From Klebsormidium nitens (Eukaryota; Plantae; Klebsormidiophyceae), in contig DF237612.1 of NCBI GenBank assembly GCA_000708835.1, positions 1-46,212 on the forward strand: a DNA stretch of 46,212 nt, written 5' to 3'. Numbering within the stretch: the first letter of the stretch is position 1; each line of letters starts with the position of its first letter. Below, one piece after another: positions 8,101 through 45,679 of this stretch. A model generated the notes under the pieces. It had not been told where the DNA came from. It was given only the letters and a program-made list of their open reading frames with translations, and searched no databases. The position numbers and the translations under genes were made by a program.

Positions 8101-11100
8101 AAGCGAAAGGGGACAATCTGAAAGCCTGAATCTTGCCCACTTGTATCGCCTTAGTGAGCACCTGGGGTCTTCCTCCCATCACAGAAGCTGATCCTTCTGA
8201 GAAGCCCAGGAGTTCTTCCTCGAGGTTAGACAAGCTAGCTTTCGGTCTAACAGCAATTGGGGGCTTTCCCACCGACGCATCACGAGAATCTAGAGTACTT
8301 ATGAAGCCCAGGTTATGAAGGAACAATTCGCCCAAGACGGGTTGGGTTATCAAGGAGCTTCAAAGTCGGCACGGGTGCGGAGCAGGAAACTGTTTCAATT
8401 TAGGATTTCGTGTGAAGCATCGTTCTTGTAAGAGACTACAAATGTCGTCCAGGTAAATGGTTCGATACAGACATTTCAGGTTAAGCATCGTTCTTTATAG
8501 GATTTAAGAACATAATCCACTATTCTAATAAGCTATCCTCACCTCCAGCGCGTGGTGGCGGTGAGGAGCGTGGACGTCTGCAGCATGGTGAGAAAGTCCT
8601 CGCGCGCCTTCTTCTGCCGCAGCCGCTGCTCCTCCTTCTCCGCCTTCTTCTTCTGCGTCTGGTACTGCGCACACAAAGAAACAGCGAAATAAGAAGCTGG
8701 CAAGCATCAAACTAAATGACGGTCAGCTGCTCCTCCTTCTCCGCCTTTTTCTTCTGCGTCTGGTACTGCGCAAACAAAGCGGAATTTCGTGAGATTGTAA
8801 ATGATACGCAACAAAAGAGTGATCGAGCCTGCCCGTCATAGCAAAAAAACCGTATTTGGTGTGCTTTCTCCGCCTTCTTCTTCTGGGTCTGATACTGCGC
8901 ACACGAGAAGGGGCCAGCGTCGGAGCGTTAAAAACATTGCGACAAAGCAGGTGGCCAAATAAATGAGCATTCGCCTGTAAGTTCTGCCGGTCTCTCCGCC
9001 GTGTTCTTCTGGTACTTAGGACACGACAAAAGCGAAGATGATACCTAGCAGAGCAACAGAGTACGTCTTTGTTCACGGATCAGCGGATTGGCGGATCGGT
9101 CACTCCTCCTCCTCTTCTTTCTTCACCTGCGTGTGGCACTTGATGTGGAGCGAAGTGAGATTCTGGAGAGATCCTTTGCAACATAATATGCCTTCGAAGG
9201 CAACAGTGAAGACAAGTAATCAGCCCCAAAAAACTTGAGTAGCACTTCGACTTTATGAACAACTTGTGACTCATCGCAAGATGGAAAAGCAAGAAGCTGG
9301 GTGTGGGCCACGTTGAACTGCGCTGCCACGTGTGACTGTTGAATAAGTGCCATACTAGTTGAGCGCCCTTTCTCAAGTGAGAACAGGAAGAACCTTCTCC
9401 AGGTCATCAGAACAGCACACCGACCCCACACGTCCGACTACAGAACCGAGCAGGGAACTGTGAGCTTTCAAAGAAGGAAATCCCACTCCGGAGTTCAGCT
9501 CGGCAACATCCAAGTCCCTCTTTTTTTGGGAGCACGCTTGCAAATCGTTCAAAGATTGAAAGAACTGCGCTTTTCGAGTTACCTCGTTGAAGGCCTGCTT
9601 CTTCTCGCCGAGCGTCTTGAGTGCCACGTAGCGCTTGTCAGTGATGATCTTCTTCATCGCCTGCTCCCACGTCCAGTCCAGCCCGATCTTCTGCGACTCC
9701 AGCATCTCCTTGAACGCATTCTTGGCGTCCTGCACGGGAAAGGACGTGCATTTATAAATTCAAATTCAGAGAGTTTATTCAATGTCGAAAGCTTTATTGC
9801 AGTTGCAAGCCTTGAAATTTGCTTTCGCTTGTAGAAGCTTCCGAGTTGGCAAGGATTCAAAATCTCAAAGCCAAGCAAACAAACTTCGGCTGTATAAGGA
9901 GGCGGACACTGCTATCAACGTAGATAGCAGGCAGTTATATCCGAAGCTTTTTACATTTGCGCTGGGGCGGTGTAAGATGCTGGAACATTTACCCCTGCTG
10001 AGCTGCTGCTACGAGCGACACTTGCAAACGACTACTGGAGCTCAACCGTACAACCTGTTCTTCAGCTCAGGACACACCAAGCCGGACTTTGCTACGTTTT
10101 CTACAACAGCCAGCAACACGAAGGAGGTGAATATTTGCAGGAGCGATCAAAACGTTACCTGCTTGTTAGCGAACACCAGAGGCTCGTTCTTGAGGGTCGG
10201 CTTGACCTCCTCTGCGGGGGTAGTGTTGATCTTCCCCACAACGGGCTGCGCCTTCTTCGCTTCCTGCCAGAGGAATGGGAGATGGGGAATCAGCAACAAT
10301 AAACCTTTTTGTACCAGAATCAAAAGGAGAGTGCGTTTAACCGCCAGGAAACCGTGCACACATGCACCTTGTAACGAGTGCGCTGCTCATCCAACACGAA
10401 ACACGTTCTCCGAGCAACATTACTCTTTCGGCAGCCAGAAACGGGTGCTTATGAGCCAGGTCAAAAGCCGCCACTTGTCAACCGGCTCATCTTTTGCTCA
10501 GATGTGGCCAACGCGTACACAAGGAAACCGCAGAGGGTATACATTCAAAGACCCGCGGCCTTCGGCCCCCGCTAGCAAACTTTGCGACCCGTTCTGCATC
10601 TTCATCCGCAGATGCCCTTGACCTGCGTCTCAACGTGCAGATCGACCTTACGAACAACCTGCAGTTCGGTCTGCGTCTTAATCCGCAAAGAGACCACAAC
10701 CTGCTTCTCAACGTGCAAATCGACCAGCCTCGCTCACCTTCAGATTCTCAGCGGAGGCGCGCCCATTGACCGACACGCCATTCCCGGCCTGCTCGGGCGT
10801 CGGGAGCATCGGCGCGGGAGACAGCGCGGCCGGCGAAGCGCCAGTGAGCGGGGTCACAGGAGACGGGACGTAAGGCGCCATGGCGGGAGAAGGGGACATG
10901 GCCGGGGGAGGTCGGAAGGCAAGGGACGCACCGGGACCTGAGAGGGGTAAACTCGTGTCTGAGCCAACGGCACTCGAAGATATCATGGTGTGAAGACAGG
11001 GTGAGATTGACAAGGCGGAACTGAGAAGGCGTGATATAAAAAACATGCCACTTGAAAAGGGTGGCTTGACTCCTGCAAGTGCTCTACTTACGTATCAACA

Positions 11101-14100
11101 ACCGTACGACTGCAAAACCATGGGTAATGCAAACAACCTCTGGGACTACAAACAATCTCTACGACTGCAAACAAAGACTACGACTGCAAACAAACTTTCA
11201 GGACTGCAAAGAAGCTTTAGAACCGCAAGCGAAATTTGAACCGCAAGCAAAAACCGAGTCCGCAAACAAAGCCAAGTCCCTCACCCGCCCCCAGGGGCGG
11301 TCCTCCCACCGCCGCCGCCTGCGCTTCTTTCGCTGCCTTCAGGTCCTCCGGCAGGGTCCACGTGGACAATTTCGTGATCTTGTTGAAGTAATACGTGCGC
11401 CCGTCGGGGTTGGTGTGCTCCTTCCAGATGTTGAACGGGTTCTTGAGCTCCTCGGGCGTCATCATTTCGAACGGCTTCTCCCACACGGACTGCTTCGTCA
11501 CCTTGTTGAAGTAGTAGGTGCGCCCGTTGGGCGACTTATGCTCGGTCCAGAGGGCCGCGCCGGCGGGGGCCATGCCGGCAGGAGGGGCGCCGGAGGGCTA
11601 CAGGAGTGCACAAACGACGTAAGCATAGCTTGCATAGTCCCGTGATTGATTCATGGAGCTGGACGAGGGCGCGGGGGAGGGCTGTAGTAGTGCATATTGA
11701 AGTGAGGATTCAGTGGACAATCCGATCCAATCAAGTTTATGACTGGTGGAGTCCAAGAGATTTGGCAAAGGTCTAGGCAGATATGCTCAATGAGCAGCAG
11801 CGGGAGAAACGTTCGAAGTGGCGGTATTGTCAGGAATGACATCGAAACCACCGACCGGGGTCGAACAGGTGCGCCAGACAAGGGCTCGAGTAAAGAAGCA
11901 CAATCAAACTTCTCAGCCAGGTGCAATCATGGTTCATAAAGTGCGCTTCTTTGGAAGGACGTTTCTGCGGAGGCCAGCATAACGGCCCAAAGGTGTTCTT
12001 TGTAAGGCAACATCCGGCAAGCCAACCTACGCAAGGTCTCCTAAATGAGGTTCCAGAAAGTATGGCTTTGCCAAAATGTACGAATAACAAGATGCTCGTA
12101 CACAACAACTCCGGCAGGGAACTCACCGGCGCACCGGCTGTTGGCGAGAACGACCCGGGAGGGGCCCCTGGGGAGCCCCCGAGGAAAGGCGGCCTCGCTC
12201 CCTGAGGGAAGCCCGGTTGGCCGCCCGGGGGAGCGCCGCCTGGGGGTCCAAAACCCGGTCGAGGAGGGAACTGCCAGGATATGAATCGGAGATTAAGTCA
12301 TTGGGAAATCTGTGTCAGTCCCAAGTCCCCGAAGGCAGTTGACATCAGTCGGACCCTTCTCTTAGAACATGCGGCATCTCAATATATTTACCGGATCAGA
12401 CGTAATTGTTGTTGAAAGATCCCAGATCATATCAAGATCCGCTAGGTTTCAGCAATTGCATTTCTTCGGGAGTTGCTAGAGGAGTCAACTCTGCTGCTAA
12501 GGGAGTCATATCGCAACCAAATTTTGCTGCGACGGTTCGTACATAAAAAGCACCTGAAAGGTCCCTGGCGGGGGAGTCCCTCCAGGCCTGGGAAGAGGGG
12601 CAAGAGAGGGGGGCGCTGCAAACCCCGATGGCCCAGGGGGCGCCTGGCAGGAAAAAGCCCGAAACAGATACGCTTTTGAACAGGCACGGTTTTGTACCTT
12701 TGTCAAATTCCACAGACTGGACAAAACGACCCACTTATGAAACCCTCTTTTTATCACACAATCTTGCGGGAGGGTTCGATTTTCAGAGCCACCGGAACCC
12801 CGTCGTTGTCAAAGATGGGCCTGTGCACAACACTGCTCTGTTTGTCAATCCTGGCGCACAAACTCTCAGTAGTATGTCATGTGGACACCGACGACTCATC
12901 CATCGTTGGGACAGCACGGAAGGACTCAGGAAAAGGGGCGACAAGTCGGGTATGACGAAAAGCCCAACAAAATAACGAAACTTTCAAGAACGGTTCCGAA
13001 ACTCACCCCAGTTGGCGGAGGTCCAAGTTGTCCCGGTGCTCCATACCCTCCTGGCGCAACAGGAGGCCGAGCTCCTGGGGGATACTGGGCCTGCCCGGGG
13101 GGGCCGGTTTGGCCTGGCGGCCTGGCTGGAGGGGCCCCCGGATACGACGCACCGCCGGGATACCCGCCACCACCAGGAGCTGCGGAAGAGGGCGAAGAAT
13201 TCCGGATCAAGCTGTGGCGACATAACTTGCTTGAAAAAGGGCAGCGACTCCTTACTTCAAACAGGAGAGACGGCGCACCGGTGCTTTGATGCTTCCAACC
13301 GGGTAATCTGGTTGAACCCTCTTCACAGGGAATTCGGGTTCGGTCATATGCAGGGTCAAGAAGTTGCAGCACGACTTTGCGATGCAATAGGTTTGTAACT
13401 CCTGAGGTTTGACAGCATGCTGCATTCTCAGCGATGAAGCGTCCCACTGGATACTTTGTTCGAAATATACTGAACCTTGTGATGTAAGGGCCCTGCCAAG
13501 ATGCCACTGAGAAGCTAGTGCTAGCACTGGTAAACATTGAGAAACTGCAACCTCCGTCCTGTGACCTTGGACTTTATAGGCGAGCAAAGCAAGGCGCTTT
13601 GAATTTTCCGGATGCAGAACAAGGGAGACATACCGCCGCTGAAGCCCGTCGGCGGTGCTCCGAGTGGCCGCTGGAACTGACCCTGCAAAGGTGCAATGGA
13701 TGTTTGATGCCTTGGAGAAATGAATCACAATGTCAATGTCGGATGGTTCGTCTGGGCAGTCTTCAAAGGCTAAGGGACGTCGACGGCTGCTCAACCGCGA
13801 CGGCTGCTCGACCTCTTGCTCAAAGGCGAGCAGCAACGTACTGCTCCTCCCCAGTGTGGCCCAGTTCCACCAAGAAGCTTTTGCTGCTCAAGGAATCCCA
13901 ATCACTCAAACCATGTAAGGAGATGGTGCGGAAGCCCGCGGTATATAGAGCAATTGGAGATGAGCGCACAAACTTGACAAACTCAAGGAGGAACCTTACG
14001 TTGCTTGCGAGAAGCCTGGCTGCGAGACCTATCTTTCGTTTAAGGACTTGGATCAAGCTGGCGCCAAAACCCCAATACTCCTACCGTGCCTAAATCCAAT

Positions 14101-31236: not shown

Positions 31237-34200
31237 CTACATATTCTCACTGCTGTACTTATTGATCGCGAGGCATTACCTAAACAAGCACGCAAGTTTA
31301 TCGACTTGGAAGGAAGTTGACACACTGACATTCATTGAATAAGATGCGATACTACGTCGTCTGCCTCAAAGGAGCCAAGACGTACTTGTAATTTAGAAAA
31401 GCTCACTTCTGCACCCGCGGTGAGCTGTGCTCGTCTAACTGTTTTAGTATACAAGGTCGTGCTGCAATTTATCTGGTATACTATGTGGTGACATTGAACA
31501 TCAGGTTCGAGACATTCCGTTAATATTGACACCGTTGATGACCGTCGGAACTCTTGCAAGGTCGTTCTAGCAACTTGAAATTTCTATACCGTGACGCAGA
31601 CTCGGAGTCCACTGGCCACTAAGTTGAGTTTCTGCATGCCTGTCAAGTGGAAACCCTTGGCTCCACATGCCAGCATGACGAATTGCTTAAGCTCACCGTC
31701 AGTGCGACAGCTGCAGAGGCTGAGAATATATCAGTAATAAGCTCGCCGGCCATTCTAGATCCGGCTGCTCATATGTGAGAAGCTTAGCGTTATCCGACAC
31801 GATATCTTGACCGACTTTATGAGTGATATTCAATGTTGAATGCGGGCTCTCGTGCTTAATGTCGGACATGTCTTGACCGCGGTTAAACAAGGAAGCCGGG
31901 TACTTTAAACTCGGGGCCGGGCCCTGGCTCCAACCCAGAAATATCGTATATCGTCTATACCAAATACAAGCTGGCTCCCATGCAACGCGTGGGGTTCTTT
32001 GAGCTAGGCCGTATGGCCTAGTAGCCATAGGAGTTCCACATTAAGTGAAGCATGGCCGCCATATACCTGCAACTATGCTACCAAGCGGCCCGCAATCTCG
32101 TTGCGAAATGTAATGCAGTGCCAGCTCGGTATAGACCGCATCACGCCATGCCAAGCCTGGAAGTACTTGCAAACGCAGGCTTCCAAAAGTCTTATCAAGA
32201 TCTGCTTGCAAGCAATATTCTTGCCGTCCTGCCTCAATGCCCGGCTCGAGGCCATCCTAGGTCTGATTCCTAGTCAATAACTTGGTAGAACACCAAGTTC
32301 CTGCAAGCGATCTGCTGTCAGACTTTGTCTAGGCAAACTCGTTCCTTGGTGGTCGCGGATCGGAATCTCCAGTTTAGCGTTCCCTGCTCGAAACAGCATG
32401 TTAGCCTACTGGCGGGTCTCGAGTTCCGATCGGAAGCAGGCAAATTGGACACAGTCCGAGTTCGACCAGGCGCGTCCGCAAGCCGCTGCGTTGCCTATGC
32501 CGAGGCCTCGCATCGTCCAAGGCGCTCTGCACAGCCGCAATCGTCTTGGCCACCTGCAAAAAAGAGGTGAAAATGTGTAATCAGTACTTTGGGAGGGGCC
32601 TCGTATACTGCAAAAAGTTCGTCCTGACTTTCGAAGTAAGAGGACTTCTGAAACGAAGGGGGAAACGGCTCGTCGACATCAGAAGGGAAACAGAACCGCC
32701 GAGACACTGGTACCTGTGTCATCTTAACGCTATGACGTCGAGCTTCTGTGTCCGCATGTTCTGCATCGCGGGCGCCGAGTCTGGTCTGCCGTTTTAATGG
32801 CCGTTTGCATCTCGCACATTCGAGCTACAAAAAAGCTTCATTTGCCGACCAGAAGCAGAATGAGACGCCTCAAAGAGTCGTAGGCTCGAAAACTGGCAAG
32901 TGACTCGTCTCTATCTTCTCCCTAGCTAGCCGTTCACAATGGTCAAGTAGAAACGATCCGCCCCGGCGATTTCATTTCATCAGCATCACGGCCCTTTGAG
33001 ATCGTCATAAGCCCTTCCGAGGGAGCACACGGTCTCTCTGCATGGGGGGGGTACAACCCGGACAGTTTCCGTGTGTGCAGGAAACAGGACAGAGAGGAGG
33101 AAAGTGCAGGTTCAGCTTGTAGTAAGATTTGTGAAAAGGGGGAAGATGCGAAAATCGAGAGCTGAGAGTCGGCTAGACGCTTCAAGGTCTTTAAGTGCCG
33201 CCTCACCATTTTGCAGATTGTTCCTGTTCAGCAAGGGCGAGCCAAACTCGTGTGCATGCGCTCTGCTAGGACGAAGGCGTGTGACGACTGGATTGGGGCA
33301 GCTACGTGGTGCCTGCTGATCAGCAAGAAACGGTACAATGTTTGGTCCTGCTTGATCACAATCCGAAATCGTGGTCGATATCCGGATCGGGTCTGATGTG
33401 AAAGTCGAAGGTGCTTTTTCCAATAGACCATATGTGAACGAGAAGAAACATCTTTTTCAATCGCATCGAAGGATTCAACAGGAAGAAGCCTCGTGACTGC
33501 TTTGACAAGCTTTGGGTTCTCCTCCAACAGTAGATTTTTCAGGTTCGGCTTCATTAGGATCACAGAGACGCTGAACCGTACGCTGAAGTCTGCTCAGCCA
33601 CAATGCAATCTTCAAAAAAGGTTGCAGAAGCTTTCGTAAGCAAGCAAAGTAGTTCATCATTGGAGGGGACACTTACTCTTACACAAAAAGGGATGCCTAC
33701 GACCTGGCGCAAACAACGTTGTGTAGCGACTCCCATATGTCTGCTAAGAAACGCGCTCACAAGCCCAAGACATTGACAACTCGTCTGAAGAAATGGCAGA
33801 GATCGCGAAAGGCTCCTATCACCACGACTTTCCTATAACAGGATTTCCAGTCCAGTGGGGCTGAGTGTGCTTGAAGACATCAGGGTTGGAAAGTAGACTC
33901 CGACCTCAATAGCAGTTCCCTAATCTTCGCTGACAGATTTGCTCGGTTCCACATTCTGTGATCTGACCATAAGACGGAAGTGCTTCAAGAGAAATACGAA
34001 GTCATGGAAACAGTCCAGCGTCCTGCCAGAAAGCACTCAGATCAAAGGGCCTTTGTCGGCTGTGCATGGTCTCTCTCAGTAGAAGAATCAAGTTGGCCCG
34101 ATTCCCTTACATCGTACCTGATGTCTGGTGTTGTTCAAGCTAAAGGACATGCAGCGACATCATGAAAGCCCCACCAAAACGCTAGCGTAGGCAGCCACTT

Positions 34201-34439
34201 ACCGCGTGTGACAGTCGAATGCAGTCACCGAAATGCAGCGCAGCGGCAGTCCTCGTGGTGACTCCGGCCCCCTCCGAGGTCCTGTTCCTTTCCGCAGTCC
34301 TTTGCAATCACCTCCCCGACGTCGATGGACTCTGCTCTGGGCCCCTGCCCAGCACGCCCCCGCCTCTCCTCCTTTTCGCCCCTTTCTGCGCAGTTCCCTT
34401 GTTTCTCACCTGTTCCTCTGTTTTTTCCGCAATGCCACT

Positions 34440-35486
34440 CTATGCCTCCTCCTTTTCAAGCGCTTTGTTCCCAGAGATCCCTGCTTCCTCCGGCAACTCA
34501 ACCAGAGCATTGGCCGCCGCCCGTCTTTCCCTTCTCCACCTCGCGACTCCTGCACTCATACATTGCTTGCACGCATATGAGAGGCCGTCGGCCGAATACC
34601 GATGCCGGTAAAACCGATCGGCCGTTCTCCCCTCACCACAGATCGAGCACCGCTTCGTGCTCCTCTGCACAAATGCCCCACCATCATATTTCCGCCGCCG
34701 CTCATTCAACTTTCTTATCTTTTCGTTCGTACACAGCTTGCATATCATCTGCCGCCCCATTCTGTTCCTCTTGTTTACATGGAATTCCATCGCTGGCTTG
34801 ACCTCTCCACATTGCCTGCACTTCCGAGGTTCGTCCTGTGGCTCACGTGCGGGCTTCTTTGCTAAGCCTGCTGAAAGGCATCCCCGGCAATACAACTTCA
34901 ACAAGTCCTTCCTGGTCCGATCCACACAAAAGTCGCGCGCTTCTTTGGTGCGCCCACACCGGCCGCACTTCTTAGCATGCTCCCACGATTCCGCGACACT
35001 CATTTGAAGGTGACTGTGCTTTTGCCCAGCCCGCTTTGCCCGGCAGGCGGCCATGCATGCTCGGCACACATGGTACAGCCCGTCTGCGCTAGTGGTCGTC
35101 GCCTCAAAGTCTATCAAAAGCTTTGAATGCTGACACTCGGTGCAGTGCTTGAACTCGTCCGTTTCGCCGGCAACAGATCGATCAGGGCCAGGTGTATCTC
35201 GCTCCTCAAGTTGAGTTGCCTGTCCAACCTCGGTCAAAGAGGCGGTGATTGTCCTTCCATGAACGCCAGCAACCTTTCCTTTGTTTTGTGCATTACAGCT
35301 AGCACGCAAGCCAAAACGAAACAATTCTCCTGCTGCAGCTCTGAATATAGACCCCTCGGTTCTGGTCACAAGGTGAAGCAGCTGGCCTCTCCGCGTCCCA
35401 CACTTGTTGAAGCCGGTCTTAGCTGCGCACCTGGTTGACAGTGGCGCTGACGCCTTCTTGCAAATGAAGGACTGAGCAGCTGCCAT
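34440..35486 (-). CDS. Intronless four-repeat CX2C-X22-CX2C putative zinc-finger protein with transit-peptide-like N-terminus (paralog A), 348 aa
   Basis: Part of ORF 34440-35576. The start at 35486 (MAAAQSF..) was chosen because it aligns with the MATAQ/MATGQ starts of paralogs B and C. Four repeats in 34560-35144, e.g. CTECQHSKLLIDFEATTTSADGLYHVCRAC and CSICGEGRTADRFYRHRYSADGLSYACKQC, each with exactly 22 residues between the Cys pairs. Confidence 0.85.
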   Translation of the reverse strand: MAAAQSFICKKASAPLSTRCAAKTGFNKCGTRRGQLLHLVTRTEGSIFRAAAGELFRFGLRASCNAQNKGKVAGVHGRTITASLTEVGQATQLEERDTPGPDRSVAGETDEFKHCTECQHSKLLIDFEATTTSADGLYHVCRACMAACRAKRAGQKHSHLQMSVAESWEHAKKCGRCGRTKEARDFCVDRTRKDLLKLYCRGCLSAGLAKKPAREPQDEPRKCRQCGEVKPAMEFHVNKRNRMGRQMICKLCTNEKIRKLNERRRKYDGGAFVQRSTKRCSICGEGRTADRFYRHRYSADGLSYACKQCMSAGVARWRRERRAAANALVELPEEAGISGNKALEKEEA

Positions 35487-35956
35487 CGCAGAGCATAAGG
35501 CGCTCAGGCGAGGGGCGGTACTGCGGAATGGAGATGAAGTCGTCGCCTGGTAAAAATGCAAGATGCGATGCAGCAAAAGTTTCGAAGATGTTTGCAGGTT
35601 GCAACTTGCATGAGCTGCTCTTTGAATTTGAACTTGAAGTTGTGCACGTCAGCCAGCTGCCCGGAGGTGGGTTGGAGTCCACAGCCTGACGGGTTTGAAT
35701 ATCGGGTCTACATCGGATCACTGGGTTATATCAGGTTTGGGTAGCTGCCGATCAGAGCCGCAACGCTGCCGGCGTTGATTAGCAAGGCCGCAGCATCTGG
35801 CAGCATTGCCGGTTTCCAAGCTAGGCGTCTGTGACACGTAGTCTTGCGGGTTCATATATTACCGTAGATTTGCGCACTCGGTTAGTTTCACACCGTTAGA
35901 TTAAGAGTATAACGGCCGCCACCCCTGGTTCGAATAACGGATTATGCATACTGCAC

Positions 35957-35980
35957 GCTGATTGGCTGGCGCTGATTGGC
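35957..35980. promoter_or_regulatory. Tandem CCAAT boxes in the divergent promoter between paralogs A and B
   Basis: GCTGATTGGC at 35957-35966 and 35971-35980 (reverse complement GCCAATCAGC, NF-Y-type consensus), roughly midway between the ATGs at 35486 and 36440. Confidence 0.4.
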
Positions 35981-36439
35981 CTTAGCTCCCAGTCTAAGCA
36001 CTATAGCTTAGACTGACTCTCAGCCTAGACTTGAGCTGAGGAGAGTACAAAGGGTGGATTTCCCCACCTCTGCCCTCATTCTCAGACTTCACGGATTTCT
36101 TGTGATTGAGAGGCGCCCTTCTCTTGGAAGCTTATCACCTCCCGACCTCTTGTTGCTAGTATAAGCGGGGATCTTTCCTTGTGAAATTTGCCTCCGTTCA
36201 CAGCGTCTGCCTTACAGTCCAAGACTCTTGCAAGCCTTCTGAAGCGAGCCTATTACAGAAACGCTTTTCCGCCGTAAGTAGGCCGGGTAGATATCTTGAA
36301 TACTGGTTACTTAAACCTCAGACCTGGTCTCCAGCTCAGAACCTGCAGCACTCCACTTAGAAATGGTGTTCGCAGCAAATTTCTAGGCGCTAGGTGCAGT
36401 TCCAAGAAGCTCTGTGAGCTCCGTTCCCCTGTGCTCAGC

Positions 36440-37499
36440 ATGGCCACAGCTCAAGCTTCCCTTTGTGCGACAAGGGGAGCGGCACCACCTTTCAAGCAGG
36501 CAGTTAAGCGGGGCGGCATCAGGAGAAATGAATGCTGGCACCTGGCAGGATGGAAAGGCTGCGCACAACTCCCATCTACTTCAAACAGATGTGGCGCTGC
36601 AAGACTGCAGCGTATCTGCAAGGCTTTTCCAACAAGGCTTATACCTTCAGTGCCCCAATTGCCTCCTTGTGTAGCGCTCACCAGCAACGCCTTGCTTGAG
36701 GGAAGGGACATTGGCATATGTAATCAAAGGCAGGCCGTGGGTGTTCCTTTGATCTATAAGAGGCGGCCAGTGCAAGAAAACGCGCTGTCATCAAAGTTGT
36801 TTAGAAAACCAGTGGTGATCAGGGCAGAGCTTGGGGCTGGCTCCTCGGACATTGGCCCTCAAAGTCCGAGGAGACGATGCATCGAATGCGGGCATCTGAA
36901 GCTGCTGGTAGATTTCAAGCCGACAAAGACAAGCGCTGATGGACTGACGGACTCGTGCAGAGCCTGTCTGGCGGTTTGGTCTGCGAGGCGGCCGCTGTGG
37001 GCATACGAAGGAAGTGCGCGACTTTGTGTTGGACAAGTCGAAGAAAGACAGGCTGTCTCGTTGGTGCCGGGGGTGCCTTTTTGAAAGAGATGCAGTGAAA
37101 CCAAGGTGGGAGCCGCAAGATGGGCCGCAACGGTGTTCACGATGCGAGGAGGTGAAGTCCGCGCCAGAGTTCGATGTTGACAAGAAGCGGCGGAGCGGGC
37201 TCCAGATAGTGTGCAAAATGTGCCGCAAAGACTTGAATAAGAGTGTGACCTTGCGCCGGCAGGCGTTCGCAGGGCACGGGGTTGCTCCAAGGGCCAAGAA
37301 GTTGTGTCGGTCGTGCGACAAGGTCAAGAAACTGGGCGAGTTCTATGTCGATGTGACATCAGCGGACGGCCTCGGATACGCGTGCAAGACGTGCAGTTCG
37401 GCTCAAGCAAGAGCACGGTATCGGGCGAAGAAGAGGAAAGCGGCAGGGCCGCTCAAAGAGGCGGAGGCGTCACCTCCAGTACTTGAGCTGGGTGCATAG
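36440..37499 (+). pseudogene. Frameshifted CX2C-X22-CX2C repeat gene (paralog B)
   Basis: ORF 36296-37084 gives MATAQASL.. and repeat 1 (CIECGHLK..SADGLTDSCRAC). Repeats 2-4 are in another frame (ORF 37014-37499). Relative to paralog A, 68 nt of the repeat 1-2 linker are missing near 36985-36990. An assembly error cannot be excluded. Confidence 0.75.
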
Positions 37500-37619
37500 G
37501 TTTAGTCGGACTCAAGTTACAATCCAGATAGTACTTATGTTGTAGTCACTTCGGGAAAGTGTGAGCACTTCTCGAGCAGCGCCCTCTCGATTGCGTGTGC
37601 GCGCGGGCGCGTGTGCTAG

Positions 37620-39445
37620 CTGGAGGAACTAGACGTGGGCCCCTGCGAGGAGCAAGAGTTGAAGGTGCGGTGGGAGCTGCGGGTGGCTGAGTGCCAAAGG
37701 TGGTGGGGTGTGCAACTGAACAAGGACAAGTGGATCCGTGACCAGGTGGGTCAGTGGGCTAACCCAGAATGGTCTGAGATTTCCAGTCTCAGAACCCTTG
37801 TGCAGAATTAGATGAGTTAGTCTGGCTAAGTAGGTTATCGTGCACTTACAGTCTTGATTTTGTAGGATGGGAAAGAAGTTCGTATTTTGAAATTTTGAGC
37901 TGGTAAGTTGATCAATGTCTACGTGTTAGAGGCCCGTCATCTGTTGAATCTGGAAACTGTACGTCGAGGGGGCAAAGTACTGTGTGACTGGCTGGTTGAT
38001 TGAGTAAGCCTCTCGTACCTTTCGATATCTGTGTTGGCAAATGTGACATCTGTGGGAGGATTGAAAGCCTCGCCTTATGGATCCTCGGATTGCAATGTTT
38101 GAGAGTCGACATCAGAGAGAAAGGGCTGAGGCCAAGGGGCCAGGCTGGGAAAGCACTTCAGCTTTGTGAGTCTCTTCGCTTTTGAAATCATCGGGCTGAC
38201 ATTTTCGCTTCGTAAAATTTCTTGGAGGGATTCGGGTATGCCACTCACTGGATTCTACCCAGACAAAGGCAGGTGATTCTTCTTCGCCAATCAATCATCA
38301 GCTTCGCTCCGCAGAAGTCGGGCTTGGTATCCAGAACAGTGCTTCTCCTATAGAGTACACCCTTCTCTCTTCTTTGGCCAAGCCTTGTCTTCTGTTGATG
38401 GACAAGGCTTGTGTTTCTCCTGTCGACAGACAAAAACTGTAGTTGTGAACACGTTGATCCTCGTGTCAAAGGCCGAAGTTCTCAAAAACGGCGAAGTCAC
38501 TGACGCAGTCGAAGCTGTCCGAGTGTTGGGTATGACTTTGGGTCCCTTTCAGATCGTATTACCCTCCTTGTCAAGTGCAAGTCTCGCGGTTTCTACTGAG
38601 TTGATGGGAACTTTCAATTCTCGACTTGGCAAAGTTTAAGCAGAGTCTCGTTCTCATTTCTTGGAGGTATAGCTGTCCTCTCCCGAACGGCTTACAAACT
38701 TCCTTCCTTCCCTTTTTGACGTCAGGAACGCATGCGCTCCCTCGAGCTCCGGCTCGCGCAGCTGCAGGCGCAGCAGTCCACGTGGCAGGCGGAGAAGCTG
38801 GCCCTGAGTGGCACGTCCAGAAACTAGAGGCGGGAGAGCTGCGCGCGTGGGGAGCGCTCGCACGCGGTTCCAGGCGCAGGCCGAGAGACTCGATCGAAAG
38901 CTGCACCTGAAGGCGCTCGTGAACGCGGTTCTGGAGCGCCAGGTGAGGAGCATCGAACGGCTCGGATCTTTTCTTGGGTCAAACGGACCAATGATATCTT
39001 CGTCGACCTAACATGCGGCCCTTCTCTGGAGCTTCGAGAGCCGTTCACCGATCAAATGTCGCTTTTGAAGATCCCAGTTCTTACTCGATCCACCGTTTGC
39101 TGTCTGTGCATTAAAGGCAGCAACAACTGTCAAAACAGTGCCTTGACCCCCGATCATGGACGCTGAACAGATTCCGTACGTAGATTCTGGACACTAAACG
39201 AATTCCGTCCTCGTCTCCGTGCAGGTCCGGACGCTCGCATACGCTCAGCCGTGGGTCCGCCGTTGGACTCGACTGCGCCTCTGCCACCCCCGCCCCCCCT
39301 GTTTCACCACTGCGTACAAAGAAATGGAGCGACAGGAGATGTTCCGGCTCTGCTCAAGATGTACCATATTGGAAGAAGCTACAAGGCTGACACGTGTCAC
39401 TTGCCAGGCGAACAGAAGGAATTATGGGCTGCTTCGGGACTTTGA
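37620..39445 (+). pseudogene. Spliced coiled-coil-like gene remnant with frameshifts
   Basis: Exon-like blocks with AG/GT ends: 37620-37745 (LEELDVGPCEEQELKVRWELRVAECQRWWGVQLNKDKWIRDQ), 38726-38942 (ERMRSLELRLAQLQAQQSTWQAEKLAL / EWHVQKLEAGELRA / RFQAQAERLDRKLHLKALVNAVLERQ, needing two 1-nt frameshifts) and 39225 onward (VRTLAY.. then GPPLDSTAPLPPPPP after another shift). No start codon identified. Confidence 0.55.
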
Positions 39446-40944
39446 TCAATTCATCCATCGAGAACGGCAATTGCTAAACGTGCAGAATTCTTTTTTACCG
39501 TACGTCCTTTCATCAATGATAAAAAGAAAAGACCCCGGAAGAGCAGGGATATTAGAATAGGAAGCTAGTGGATATGTAGATTACGGTTTGCTTTTCACTC
39601 ATTGTCCGAAAGTTCAACCAAGCTAGAAAGCTCTCAGGCCAAGTCGCGTCACCATATACAGTGCCCGTCATGGTGGACCAGCATGCCGGGCCAGCGCTCA
39701 GGCTGCGCATGGCTTACGTGCCCATATGATCATTGATAGTTGAAAAATTAAAGGACATCATTGATAGTTGGAATGTTATTTGCAGTGTTGGTACGCACGC
39801 ACCTATAGTGAGTGCACTGCCTATGGACTCGGACGTATCTTATATAGTCGCATGCGGCCGCAAGTCAGGGCACGGATATGTTGATGCGCATGATCTGAAC
39901 TTTGAAGATCAACCGTGGCGGTGTGACGCAAATTAACTGCAGGGTCTCCGCTAAAGAAAGGGGCACACTGCCGCCGCCGCCGCCGGCAGTGCACTATGCA
40001 CATCAGCCGTATTCACCGGCACTCTGCGGAGCCTCTCATGTTGCATCATGCTCACGCTTACATAGTTGGTGAGTGGCCATGAACAAGAAGGATGCACTTC
40101 CAAGGCGCCTTACTTCTCCATCCCTCTTCCTTGGGTCCATTGGAATTCGGAATAATGAACAGTCCTATCCGGAATCACAATATGTTCTGTACTCTGTGGA
40201 CGGGATTGCCGACCAGTGTCACTTACCTACCTTATCCGGAGGTAATTACGTGCATTCCCGTCGACGCCGACCGGGGGTTTATAAGGTTTACCGAAGAGGG
40301 GCGGCCGCGCTCGAGCGATCGTGCCCCATCCTTTGCGGCAAAGCCATAATATTTCACAGCGGCTCTGGTCCATTCGGAAATTTTAAATACGTGTATACAG
40401 TGAACTTGCAATTGACCATATATGTCAGTTGCGAGTTGTATGTAGTCTTCAATACTCTAGCTTGTACTTGTATGCACTCAATCACAATCATTAGAGTATA
40501 TACTAGCTTGCACCTGACATGCACTAGCTAGCTCCGCCGCGACAGCTGGCATGCAGTGTACGGCCTACGGCGGGTATAAGGGATCAAGCGACGGTAATGC
40601 ACGCATATGTAATATGCAACATTTGAACGGTCAAACTTGAAAGCTACAAGTTGGCATCAAAGATCGACTCTGGCATGTCCGGGCCCAATGCTGATAGAGG
40701 ATCGATGGGTTCATGCTGCGGCACCTTAGACACCGTGTCACGATGTGCGCACTGAAGTACGCTATGCATACTATAAAAAACATCTGAATCCATCTCGTAG
40801 CGCAAGCATTAATCCAATCCTGTTGGACAGCACCGACGCCAAGTAACGTGTAAATGAAAACATGCGGGAGTGGTGCCGGTATGGACAAGAAAGTCACAAA
40901 AGCCTGGACTCTTTTTCCGAATGTCACGCGGTCCCATTTTGGCT

Positions 40945-41484
40945 TCATTTAGGCTTGATATGATTGACGGTTGATGTGCTCAAGAATCGAAGTGTCCTGA
41001 TTTCCGTAGTCCTTTCTTCGCTTCCCCTGCTTTTTCGGATGTCCTTCCGGCCCATCGCAAGCGCATCGTCCAGCAACTTTTCCAGTACCCTCGTCTTTTT
41101 ACTGCTTCCAACCCCCTCCCCATTTGCTGCCCAAGCACCCCCCTGTTCTCCGTTTGCACTCGACTCTCCGGCCGCTGGTTCTCCGTTCTCCCCCTCCGCT
41201 TCTTCTTCCTGTGCCTCTAGTTCTTTGTCCTTTCTTCTCGCCCATTTCTTCCGTCTCTGATTCTCTTGCCCCCTTGTCGTACGTACTCCCTGACTGCCCA
41301 GCCTGCTTTTCGTCCGGGGATCCCTCATCGCCCTCGCCAGTGACGTCAGCGCCTTCGTCGTCCGACTCCTCCGCCGCGTCTCCGTCTGGCGCCTGCCCTT
41401 CGTCCAGTACCCGCCTGCCACGTGGCAGGCTCTCCTCTTCGGCGGCTTCGTCGATCTCCCCGTAGCGGCGGACTCGCCATTCGC
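40945..41484 (-). pseudogene. Degenerate acidic/charged coding remnant
   Basis: After acceptor ttgtccag (41485) one frame reads EWRVRRYGEIDEAAEEESLPRGRRVLDEGQAPDGDAAEESDDEG... and then switches to KDKELEAQEEEAEGENGEP..KTRVLEKLLDDALAMGRKDIRK; one frameshift is needed. No family recognised. Confidence 0.35.
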
Positions 41485-44111
41485 CTGGACAAATCCATAA
41501 CGAGATTCACGTTAAAGAAGCGAACGCTGCTGAAAAAGTACCACAGCATTCAGATGCTAATAGATTCAACTGGTAGTGGACAACTGTCTTCGACCTCGCT
41601 TCTCGAGACGCCATTGCAAAACGTGTCCGCTCAGTGCACGCAAAAACCCCTTAGCTTGGTGACGTCAGGGGCTGTACCAGGTTATACCCAAGAAGAATCG
41701 GTAGGACGGCTTGGCGTTCCACGTGAGCGGGGACAAGCTGAATGAAGGAAGCGAAGGACTAAACCATGAAAGATCTTTGTTTGGAAACGCCCTGCACGTT
41801 GCATGAAAGCTTATCACGGGCCTCAAAAACCGACACTTTCAAGGGGATGGAGCTGGTTTTTAGGCTTTAAAAGGGGGTCCCCTGAGGACGTGAGAAGCGG
41901 CAAAAGTAAAGGAGCCCATTGTGCGCAGGTCTTACATGGACAAGGCTGAAAGCGGAGGATGCAAACCCCCAAAGACACAGCGACACAAAATCAACTGGCG
42001 GAGAGAACAGACCGCCTGTTGCAATAGTGTATTTCTCAGAGCGGCTCTTCAAAAGCACGCATCCGAAGCGGCCCTCGAACCTTCTCTGAAGGGTGCGCTG
42101 GGGAGAAAACCCAAACCAAGCCTGATCCGCAGTGCCTCTCCGCAAACACACAATCTAGATCAGCTTCGTGAAGAACCGTGCATGGGTCTGATGAACACTT
42201 CGATAAACGTACGTGCCTATGTATATCGTCCACGCAGATTTCACAAGTGTTTTGCTGAAGTTTGCCGCACTCTCGGGCAAGCGTAGTACGCCTCAGTACG
42301 CTTCAACAGCAGCGAAAAGGTCGGGCACTATGGTTCCAAAACCGAAGTCGGGCATGACTGGGGCCATGAAACGAAACCGACAAAAACTAATTTGCCCCAA
42401 ATTCGCGTAAGGGCGACCTTCGACTTTATAAAGGGCTAAGCGGATGAAGCAGGTTGGCTAGTTGCCAACCAAAAGCTCTCGAAGAAAGGTGAGCCCAGCA
42501 ATTGGCAATTTCCTTTTACTTGCCTTAGCGAGCTGCCATATTAGTCAAGAGACTCAATACGCCTGGGCGACTTGAAATTTCAAAGCGAGCAGGTAATAAG
42601 CTGCAAAATGCTCAGCATCCCGGACTGTCAAGGACGTCATTTAACCTCTTACAGTGATGCAAGCGGTTCCTCAGAGTGCGTCATGGCAGCGGGACTTAGG
42701 CGCAGAGTATGCAGATTCCCATAAAAGATCAAGGGTATACTCTGGAAGGGAGAATGGGGGATACAACCAAACATATAAGGTACTACTCACATTGTGCCAC
42801 TTGTCTCCATCCAGCGAGGCGAGATGCGTCGTACATCAGCTCTGCAAGAACGAAGGTGGGTAGATAGTCAGACTGGGACAACTGCCGCACGACGTCATGC
42901 TGATCAAGCAACCCGGGTTTGGTCCTGGTCTCACTATTCAGAAAAGTGGTTAAAGTCAAGCTCGGGTCTGTGTAAGAGTCGAAGGTGGATCTATGATAGA
43001 CCATCGTGGGCAGGGGGAAAAATTGGCTACAATTGCATCGATGACTGCACCACCGAAAAGCTTCGTGCCAGCTCTAACAAGCTTTGGACTCACAATGCAA
43101 CGGAACTGGCCCAAAAGTGCACACGATTCGGCTCTTAAAGTAGTGACTGACGCTAAGTTGCTCTCTGCCCTATGATGACATCTGCTCAGACATCGCACTA
43201 TCAACAACAAAGCGGGGATATTTCGGAGCGACGTACAGAGTCAAACTGGCAATTGAACTCTGAGGGGTCATTTTTCTTTCAAGAATATGAAATACATACC
43301 ACCTGAAAGCAGACAAAACAATGGACAAGATTCCTCCAGGTGTCCGCTGAGGAACGCGCTCGTACGTTTCGAAAGCAAAAGCAACAAGTTTACAGAGTGA
43401 GTACCTTCCAAGGCACTTCATTCAGAACCAGACCCAGCAAAGACCAGGAACATACAATTGAGGGCGAAGTCCCGCTCTCAAGCTGCCAATCAATCTTTGA
43501 CTACTTCAGTGCTGACATTAGCGTTTGGGCAAAAAGTCTCCTTCTCAAGGAGCTAGCGGTAATAGGAGCCTTTCGCGCTGGTCTTAAGCATTCCTCAGGA
43601 CAAAACCGCTTCGCCAGAAGGCCCAGAAATAAGACTCAGTCTGCAATAGACAGAGTCTGCTGCATGGCGTTCTGTCAGAAGCCCTGTTGCAACGAGGCCT
43701 TTCGTCGGCTGTGCACCGTCTCCCTGTAGAGTATTACGGTAAACCCGCTTTCTTCAACCAGGAACAATCATTGTTGATGCCTAAGCTACAAGACATGCAC
43801 TGTCAGGATCAAAAGCCTCGGCACAGTCTCTTACCATGTTTGAGAGTTGAGCGGCCACCAAACACAGTGGCCCCGCCCCTCCTTGTGACTCCGGCCCCTT
43901 CCGCATCCTTATCTTCCTGCATCGTTCGTCTTCTTGTCACCTTCCGCACTCTCATTGAATCTGCCCCTTGAGTCTCTCAGCACCCCGGGGACTTCCCTCC
44001 CCTGCGTTTTCGAGCCCGTTAACGTTCGCCCCTTCGGCGCATCCCCCTGGTTTCTCACCTCTCCTTCTCTTTTTCCGCACCCCCCGCCCATCTGATTGCC
44101 TCATCCGTTCT

Positions 44112-45272
44112 CTATGCCTTCTTTTCTTCAAGCACGTCTGGATTATTTTTAACCTCAACTTCAGCCAGAGCTTTGGCTGCTGCCCGTCTTTGCTCCTTCC
44201 ACCGCGCAAAGTATGCGGTCGTACACGGCTTGCACATGTACGAGAGGCCATCGGCCGGGCCCTTGCGCCGATGATAGTGCTCGGCCGCCTTCTCCTCACC
44301 ACAGGCCGTGCATCGCTTTTTGCTCCTCACAAACGCCCCATCCTTAGACTCCCGCCGCCGTGCATTCAACTCTCTTGTCACCTCGTTCACGCACTGGCTG
44401 CACTCCCTGCGCCGCCCTGTCGGGCTCTTCTTGTTTGCATGAAATTCAGTTGCTGGCTTGACAAGCCCACACTGCCAGCACTTTTGAGGTTCGTCAGTTG
44501 GCTCCCTGTCGCGCTTCGCTGCCTGGTGCGCAGATACACACCCGCGGCAATACTTGCTCAAGCAATCTTTCTTGCTGCGATTGACACCGAAGTCGCGCGC
44601 TTCCTTGATTTGCCCACACCCAATGCACGTCTTGGCGCGCTCCCACGATTCTGCGACACTCAAATCAAGGTGATAGAGGCTTTTTCCGGCGCGCTTTGCC
44701 CGGGAGGCGGCCGTGCATGCTCGGCACACATCGTAGCGCCCGTCGGAGCTGGTTGTTGTCCCTTCAAAATCTACCAGCGGCTTTGTGTGCCGGCACTCGG
44801 TGCATTGCTTGATATCCCCCGCCTCGCTCCCTTCAATCAAATCAGGGCCACGATTGGAATCATAGCCGGTGTCTATAGAGCTCAGCCCTGTTGTCTCCCC
44901 AGGTGATGCACGCTCTTTCAGTGACAAAATTTGCTCCTCAAGTTGACTGGCCTGCCCATCGTCACTGAGAGGAATGTCGACTGTCCTCCCTCGAGTGCTA
45001 GCAAGTTTTCCTCTCCAAGGGAAAGAAGGTTTCGTTCCTGCAACACTGCTGCCAGCAGACCAACCACGAAACAATTGCCGGTGAAAGAAGGAAGATTCTC
45101 CCAGAGCAGCTTCCAACGTTGACCGTCTGCTTTTTGTCACGCAGCAAAGCAGCTGCCGCTGGCCTCGTGGGCACCACTGCCCCTCGCGCTTGTTGCAATC
45201 GCTTCCAGCTGCCCACTTGGAGACTGGTGGCGCCGACAAATTGCTGCAGAGCAAAGGCTGACCTGTTGCCAT
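44112..45272 (-). CDS. Intronless four-repeat CX2C-X22-CX2C putative zinc-finger protein with transit-peptide-like N-terminus (paralog C), 386 aa
   Basis: Part of ORF 44112-45398; the start at 45272 (MATGQPLL..) is homologous to A and B. Four repeats in 44223-44804; repeat 1 matches A at 22 of 30 residues. Linkers SVAESWE.AK and REP.DEP.KC are shared with A. Confidence 0.85.
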   Translation of the reverse strand: MATGQPLLCSNLSAPPVSKWAAGSDCNKREGQWCPRGQRQLLCCVTKSRRSTLEAALGESSFFHRQLFRGWSAGSSVAGTKPSFPWRGKLASTRGRTVDIPLSDDGQASQLEEQILSLKERASPGETTGLSSIDTGYDSNRGPDLIEGSEAGDIKQCTECRHTKPLVDFEGTTTSSDGRYDVCRACTAASRAKRAGKSLYHLDLSVAESWERAKTCIGCGQIKEARDFGVNRSKKDCLSKYCRGCVSAHQAAKRDREPTDEPQKCWQCGLVKPATEFHANKKSPTGRRRECSQCVNEVTRELNARRRESKDGAFVRSKKRCTACGEEKAAEHYHRRKGPADGLSYMCKPCTTAYFARWKEQRRAAAKALAEVEVKNNPDVLEEKKA

Positions 45273-45679
45273 TGCGAAGCAGAGGGCCGTGTTGCGTGGG
45301 GCGCTTGGACACGAACCTGCGCCACCACCCTTCTGTTCAGAAGTCTTGAAGGTTGTATGATTTGTCAACACACCACAGCTCATCGCGGAGTGCGCCATAC
45401 CGGGTCGTCAAATGCCATTGCAAGCTGGCTGGAAAACAGGAGTAAGGACTGGGTGACAAACACAGCTTGATGGGTTTGGATAACTTGCCTGGGAGGAACC
45501 GATTAAATCGTAGTGATGTCAGCACCGGCCTGCCGGTTTTCGAGCTGGATGTCTGCCTGTTCGAAGCCCTTGGTAGGTTCAATGTGTGGGCGTGCCGGTT
45601 ACACGAACGTTTTGCCGTCTCCGACCAAGACATGGATATTGTAATCTCAAGGTAATATACCTAGGAAATCAGAGACTTA

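Follow-up and report, generated by a model that had tools for sequence, protein, structure and literature searches.

The 46,212-nucleotide (nt) stretch of Klebsormidium nitens DNA analysed here (NCBI GenBank assembly GCA_000708835.1, contig DF237612.1, positions 1 to 46,212 of the forward strand; hereafter the window) carries three related genes, A, B and C, whose products combine a long leader with repeated, evenly spaced pairs of cysteines. The question raised by this locus is what kind of protein these genes encode, from where the repeated unit was obtained and what such a protein could do in an alga. Genes of the A and C type can be assigned with high confidence to a transcribed, selected and lineage-expanded family of virus-type zinc modules that lacks a nuclease. 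On the fuller reading our judgement is evenly balanced: this would be an expanded nuclear family in which a viral four-module zinc body, placed behind an organelle leader, serves the non-catalytic recognition of organellar nucleic acid. The novelty lies in the fixed four-unit architecture in which a known module appears, and in its new host setting.

Architecture and viral kinship of the zinc unit

An open reading frame (ORF) scan recovered the three frames at the positions given by a first-pass annotation made from the letters alone, which had described three paralogues of one architecture with an invariant 22-residue spacer. A and C agree with this description, each having four exact CX2C-X22-CX2C units, all with the 22-residue spacer, behind leaders of 114–156 amino acids (aa). 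B departs from it, being split by a 68-nt deletion that leaves unit 2 incomplete. The units are predicted to bind zinc.

The unit is, with high confidence, the virus-type 'Stc1/YonG_N-like' module that precedes the nuclease in phage endonuclease VII and HNH proteins. PHROG profiles for endonuclease VII (1035 and 2633), endonuclease (2340), HNH (2255) and a 'Lar-like' protein (5558) match the units with E-values of 1e-17 to 1e-30, which bears out the earlier comparison of the cysteine motif with the N-terminal zinc module of phage HNH and endonuclease VII proteins. These matches are limited to the zinc-module positions, in 3–4 stretches per protein, and the alignments stop before the nuclease part. 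Searches of phage genomes with tblastn returned matches at the N-termini of annotated endonuclease VII and HNH genes. In gp199 of Mycobacterium phage Omega, two units are followed by an Endonuclease_7 domain (residues 111–202), for which C has no counterpart. The same CX2C-X22-CX2C unit, with its K/F/DG signature, is found in Omega gp199, in Escherichia phage Bas72_0041 and in HNH genes of Gordonia phages, with an identity to the algal units of up to 52% over one unit. The phage proteins hold one unit or two in tandem and run on into a catalytic Endonuclease_7 or HNH part, whereas the algal proteins comprise a leader and four units and no nuclease. We know of no study on the role of this unit, and literature searches returned none.

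Neither HNH nor Endonuclease_7 gave a Pfam match to the A, B or C proteins at E ≤ 1, in agreement with the first-pass observation that no nuclease motif is present. The Pfam search of the three proteins yielded nothing above threshold; weak matches of B to zf-AD and DUF6510 lay below the cut-offs and were rejected. A sequence search of the Protein Data Bank (PDB) returned chance matches only.

A related Cys4 module is the Stc1 domain (PF12898; fission-yeast Stc1, PDB entry 2luy), which has two fingers, a tandem pair that makes up a single LIM-like domain, where the algal proteins have four. A and C have no match at E ≤ 1 to this profile, the cut-off of which is 24.8 bits, and the A ortholog P0001 reaches only 15.5 bits. 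Leader-less relatives of the family, described below, pass the threshold with 29–66 bits, which places the kinship with Stc1 at the superfamily level; the matches cover only positions ~45–84 of the profile, its second half. Faint precomputed matches to YonG_N (PF27269) are also present on the relatives, and K. nitens paralogues carry the automatic UniProt label 'Stc1 domain-containing protein'.

Predicted structure of the four-unit body

The 240-residue domain of C was modelled with AlphaFold2 using a 39-sequence alignment, with a predicted local distance difference test score (pLDDT) of 95 and a predicted template modelling score (pTM) of 0.84; a first run with 4 sequences had given a pLDDT of 68. 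Each modelled unit consists of a zinc knuckle, a short helix, a hairpin and a helix that starts at the second Cys pair, an arrangement similar to a treble clef. The pTM is high enough to indicate mutual packing of the four units, as opposed to a bead-like string, and the C-terminal ~230 residues are predicted to form a single compact body of four Cys4 zinc modules.

No match to the whole body was found among solved structures, the best Foldseek rows having E > 0.01 and a template modelling (TM) score < 0.25. For a single module, the best solved match is the zinc module of Hpy99I (PDB entry 3fc3, residues 61–106; Z-score of 4.7 and root mean square deviation of 2.3 Å over 42 residues), a weak match to a small part of a beta-beta-alpha-Me nuclease whose catalytic part has no algal counterpart. 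Stc1 (PDB entry 2luy) is likewise among the best solved matches (Foldseek probability 0.44–0.90, TM 0.31).

Among predicted viral structures (BFVD), the best matches come from Pithovirus LCPAC40x, Clandestinovirus, Tunisvirus, Medusavirus and Klosneuvirus (E 1e-13 to 1e-8 over 160–250 columns), and phage HNH and endonuclease VII proteins rank after them. In the ESM Atlas, too, the closest clusters are of viral origin, with YonG_N, Stc1 or HNH. The giant-virus proteins (Pithovirus LCPAC40x 'Zn-finger protein' and 'HNH endonuclease', and those of Clandestinovirus, Medusavirus and Tunisvirus) are arrays of tandem units with the same 22-residue spacing; together with the leader-less relatives they match the algal family at profile E-values of 1e-42 to 1e-21 and a Foldseek probability of 1.00. 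However, the viral arrays have no leader and begin directly at the N-terminus; their number of units varies, and a nuclease is often included. The overall TM score to them is low (0.2–0.3), and they show neither the conserved linkers nor the fixed packing of four units that mark the algal proteins.

The first-pass annotation had compared the proteins to the PPR and OPR repeat families. No Pfam match to these helical repeats was found, and the model is made of zinc knuckles, short strands and single helices rather than helical hairpins of 35–38 residues. The likeness to PPR, OPR and mTERF proteins is one of logic only: nuclear encoding, a presequence, lineage expansion and repeated units that possibly read nucleic acid. 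In those families the repeats are helical and binding to RNA or DNA has been demonstrated, whereas the algal family is a zinc-module body of fixed size with putative binding and location.

An expanded and selected family

Two word-indexed searches, with C and with the full-length alignment, gave 1 and 3 matches, as the indexed words fell in the variable leaders. A domain-restricted search and an exhaustive profile search recovered more relatives; the latter, across 1.84 billion representatives, returned 10,967 matches, with 55 proteins below 1e-30. As with the PHROG profiles, the resemblance lies well outside chance. These relatives fall into two groups. The first comprises ~50 clusters (at 50% identity) of proteins of 280–430 aa, with a leader of 60–190 aa followed by four units at the same spacings. 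Their linkers are conserved, for example 'HLxLSVEEAWERAK' and 'PxDxPQ', and the 16 Cys are invariant or nearly so in the 39 homologues aligned. The only named source of this group is K. nitens (KFL_002570150, KFL_000100270 and the genes of the window); the other members come from run assemblies and two Joint Genome Institute (JGI) samples. At least 15 paralogues come from a single JGI organism, on eukaryotic-looking contigs of up to 83 kb. Here a family member is followed, 1.5 kb downstream, by a reverse-transcriptase ORF (contigs L003/L004, 12477–13556); no such ORF is present in the window.

Run SRR23617307, from a relative, contains orthologs of A (79% nt identity) and B that keep the synteny and the divergent order of the window, and a second divergent pair elsewhere. 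The members of this relative sit as divergent pairs ~200 nt apart (contig L002, 8458–10885; contig L001, 1–2095), and the head-to-head order of A and B thus recurs in it. Among A, C and the A ortholog, dN/dS is 0.34–0.41 for the domain and 0.43–0.70 for the leader; the domain is under purifying selection. The most likely reading of these sequences is that A, B and C arose by local duplication within a nuclear family whose members multiplied in Klebsormidium and its relatives. No paper on the algal family was found in literature searches (Stc1 domain or zinc finger; horizontal gene transfer in Klebsormidium), and the automatic Stc1 label is the only designation met with; the family is uncharacterised, as had been proposed.

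The second group consists of leader-less arrays of 4–12 units that start at the N-terminus; those tested are the relatives that pass the Pfam Stc1 threshold. Their contigs are densely packed, one being virus-like (helicase, SNF2, RNase T and FtsK-type ATPase) and one prokaryote-like, and one member comes from the green alga Ostreobium. The virus-like contig (L005) carries two leader-less array genes ~0.7 kb apart, with one small gene between them (8682–11386), and may be related to the donor of the algal family.

Because contigs of virus-like and prokaryote-like type commonly carry arrays of 4–12 units, the alga need not have assembled the array itself. The first-pass proposal of a domesticated viral module multiplied into an array is therefore upheld in its viral kinship, to phages and giant viruses, and loses the need for multiplication in the host. 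Both giant viruses and phages have such arrays, and green algae are known to harbour endogenous giant viruses (PMC9693826); on these grounds we consider, with moderate confidence, that the array was probably taken up ready-made from a virus. In this scheme a viral array would have been captured, an N-terminal leader added and the gene then duplicated repeatedly; the nuclease would have been lost, or was never present.

Gene B

B is transcribed, but its reading frame is broken by a deletion. In an alignment with A and C, 68 nt are missing at the junction 36990|36991, so that the linker and unit 2's first Cys pair are lost and the frame is shifted; the remaining 14 Cys are intact. RNA contigs across the deletion site show no difference from the genome. 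The deletion is therefore real, and an intron or an assembly error behind the frameshift is ruled out by the same colinearity. The first frame is open from 36296 (plus strand), and its start was taken at 36440.

Compared with A and C, B has a pN/pS of about 0.5, given as proportions because the Jukes–Cantor-corrected dS is saturated at synonymous sites. B is either an old copy that was broken late or the current maker of a one-unit product. In the B ortholog of the relative (contig L001), the leader and unit 1 are open. B and this ortholog share a conserved stretch, 'V-I-R-A-(E/V)-L-G-A-G-S-S', ~20 residues upstream of unit 1 (window 36800–36830), which resembles a stromal processing site and is a candidate for one. 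The public model KFL_006630050 (162 aa; B, 37218–38824) is truncated and includes a predicted intron that removes the stop; this intron is not seen in the RNA contigs that cover B.

Transcription and splicing

RNA contigs of four runs (4 studies) were compared with window positions 32000–37999. The RNA nature of the four runs is established by minus-strand GT..AG joints that skip 32551–33203 and 33312–34201. Between 35774 and 34202 single contigs follow the genome without a break, which shows that the coding region of A is unspliced; it is seen without a gap in all four runs. The A contigs run on through both joints to about 32100, and the B contigs resume at 38727 after 37746; at these downstream joints assembly may have merged two overlapping transcripts. 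Introns of the A and B RNAs appear to start 238–247 nt past the stop codons, and all splice sites are canonical. The description of the genes as intronless thus applies to the coding regions of A and B, which are unspliced in the RNA contigs, but not to their transcripts, which have spliced 3′ parts. No long open frame was found in the downstream exons of A and B, read singly. Contigs of lower depth retain the first A intron (33287–34231).

The 5′ untranslated region (UTR) of A (35487–35774, minus strand) contains three upstream ATGs, at 35713, 35611 (a 35-codon ORF) and 35496; the last opens a 25-codon ORF that overlaps the main start out of frame. The B 5′ UTR has one upstream ATG, at 36363 (7 codons).

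For gene C, at least 93% of the sampled words of 44000–45500 are present in 18 runs from 7 studies, and 4 of these 18 runs are RNA, as shown by the spliced joints at 32000–37999. The public model of C, KFL_006630070 (182 aa; 44115–44651), is truncated, with a predicted intron that joins 'MAT' to 'ESWERAK'. The protein of gene A was not found among recorded proteins in these searches. As the K. nitens models for two of the three genes are truncated, proteome-based surveys will have missed the true build of the family.

Gene layout

A and C are parts of a tandem duplication of ~9.6 kb, and A and B are divergent neighbours (Table 1). When the flanks of A and C were compared as protein, they had no other coding exons in common. 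Between the A and B transcripts, ~300 nt are not covered by RNA contigs; here, at 35940–35985, two 'GATTGG' motifs lie close together, which are CCAAT boxes on the opposite strand and suggest a shared bidirectional promoter.

The A/C duplication was the only repeat seen in a search of the window, with no inverted or terminal repeats around the genes, and no transposon or virus Pfam domain was detected in the ORFs between and beside A, B and C; the possibility, left open by the first-pass annotation, that the motif belongs to a transposon ORF gains nothing from the window. The transcripts adjoining the three genes are spliced, host-type RNAs. A, B and C are host genes rather than a fresh insertion.

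Table 1 Features of the A, B and C locus (window positions).
Feature	Position	Strand	Basis and remarks
Second A downstream intron	32551..33203	-	GT..AG; joints in 4 runs
Intron 3′ of A stop	33312..34201	-	GT..AG; joints in 4 runs
A transcript, first exon	34202..35774	-	5′ UTR, coding region and 238 nt past stop; contigs X3 record 16, X10 record 13
Gene A coding region	34440..35486	-	348 aa from conserved Met 'MAAAQ' (start at 35486); stop 34440-34442; ORF scan, frame open over 34440-35576
A zinc unit 4, then long basic helix	34560..34649	-	Motif; helix 202-230 of model
A zinc unit 3 (CX2C-X22-CX2C)	34731..34820	-	Motif and invariant Cys
A zinc unit 2 (CX2C-X22-CX2C)	34878..34967	-	Motif and invariant Cys
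A zinc unit 1 (CX2C-X22-CX2C)	35055..35144	-	Motif and invariant Cys
A leader, 114 aa, candidate organelle presequence	35145..35486	-	Acid-poor; Ser/Thr/Ala/Arg/Lys-rich
Shared divergent promoter region of A and B (candidate)	35775..36067		No RNA contig covers core 35800-35999 (zero depth)
B transcript, first exon	36068..37746	+	Colinear with genome; contigs X10 record 14, X3 record 18
B first frame: leader and unit 1 (36878-36967)	36440..37084	+	Out of frame past junction 36990|36991
B second frame	37014..37499	+	Unit 2 second Cys pair 37065-37076; unit 3 37134-37223; unit 4 37305-37394; basic tail
B downstream intron	37747..38726	+	GT..AG; contig loose end maps to 38727
Conserved GT donor 3′ of C's stop (predicted)	43826..43844	-	Alignment; homologous to A's 3′ donor
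Gene C coding region	44112..45272	-	386 aa from conserved start 'MATGQ' (45272); leader (156 residues) and four zinc units; frame open over 44112-45398
C zinc units 1-4	44715-44804, 44538-44627, 44391-44480, 44223-44312	-	Exact CX2C-X22-CX2C

Leader, candidate function and alternatives

The leaders are poor in acidic residues. In the first 40 residues of 39 members, the medians are 1 Asp/Glu, 4 Lys/Arg, 7 Ser/Thr and 5 Ala, where about 4.6 Asp/Glu would be expected at 11.5%; the first 40 aa of the A leader contain no Asp/Glu and 7 Lys/Arg. A presequence-like composition is seen in about 85% of the 39 members. Many begin with 'MA', and several N-termini look like classic (mitochondrial) presequences, such as 'MLFRALLSLRSAAIRS'. 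Reading the leaders as signal peptides is ruled out, as they have no hydrophobic core. By composition, the leader is most likely a chloroplast or mitochondrial presequence, a view that we hold with moderate confidence, and it would direct the protein into one of these organelles. The mature domain has an isoelectric point of about 9.5 and contains 21% Lys+Arg. From this basicity and by analogy, we suggest with moderate confidence that the mature four-zinc body, as a recognition factor without catalytic activity, would bind organellar DNA or RNA. An acid-poor leader and a basic domain fit organelle import and nucleic-acid binding and prove neither.

Several points weigh against this organellar interpretation. 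At 60–190 aa, the leaders exceed the usual length of transit peptides and could be disordered basic regions. Fission-yeast Stc1, the nearest characterised relative, is a nuclear adaptor between RNA interference and chromatin modification and uses its zinc fingers for protein–protein contacts rather than for nucleic-acid binding, and any role of the module in phage nucleases is itself putative. A dN/dS near 0.4 corresponds to only moderate constraint. An intron more than 200 nt past the stop normally marks an mRNA for nonsense-mediated decay, and 3′ introns so placed fit a low-level or regulated product. The virus-to-alga direction of transfer is putative, and the restriction to Klebsormidium relatives is provisional.

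The main rival, which we regard as unlikely although it deserves serious weight, is a nuclear Stc1-like adaptor or DNA-binding role. The proteins would then be adaptors in the nucleus or cytosol, with a disordered leader: their modules would contact other proteins as in Stc1 (Argonaute and chromatin factors being examples), or would bind nuclear DNA for transcription or silencing, perhaps to counter viruses or transposons. Such a role is favoured by the Stc1 tandem zinc finger, which ranks with the best matches of known structure, and by the UniProt label of the K. nitens paralogues, and the basic helices and tails could act as nuclear localisation signals behind leaders that are long and poorly conserved. 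However, A and C fall below the Pfam Stc1 threshold and the relatives match only the second half of that profile. The acid-poor, Ser/Thr/Ala/Arg-rich first 40 residues found in most of the aligned members would, moreover, be unusual for nuclear proteins.

It is improbable that the proteins are targeting subunits for a nuclease encoded elsewhere, such that the two-part phage protein has been split and acts in organellar or nuclear DNA repair, recombination or homing. In phages the module and a junction-resolving or nicking nuclease form one protein, and the giant-virus relatives are often annotated as HNH, which lends the idea some appeal; yet no nuclease gene lies beside A, B and C or beside the relatives on contigs L001–L004, and no data point to a partner.

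That the genes are what remains of an endogenous virus or transposon, without host function and transcribed incidentally (for example, by read-through into or from neighbours), is more improbable still: the viral kind of the module, the coding regions without introns, the broken B, the unusual spliced 3′ transcript parts and the reverse-transcriptase gene near a member in one relative could be read in this way, but the domain evolves at the constrained dN/dS given above, the 16 Cys are kept across ~50 diverged clusters, the A/B pair is syntenic in a related species, A and C are found in RNA assemblies (7 studies), and viral or transposon domains and terminal repeats are absent around the genes.

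Significance

The unit is very common in phages and giant viruses, with more than 10,000 profile matches. The algal family presents it in a stand-alone, nuclease-free and confidently modelled four-unit form, in a culturable alga with RNA data, which makes binding and location testable. It is possible, and we propose it tentatively, that a streptophyte algal lineage took up a giant-virus zinc-finger array, added organelle presequences to it and expanded it to dozens of genes, to give a novel type of organellar factor for DNA or RNA recognition, a zinc-based counterpart of the PPR, OPR and mTERF proteins with a rigid four-zinc body unmatched as a whole among solved structures. If the leaders are transit peptides, the family would clearly exemplify how a viral module can become a host organelle factor and expand within one lineage near the base of the land-plant line.

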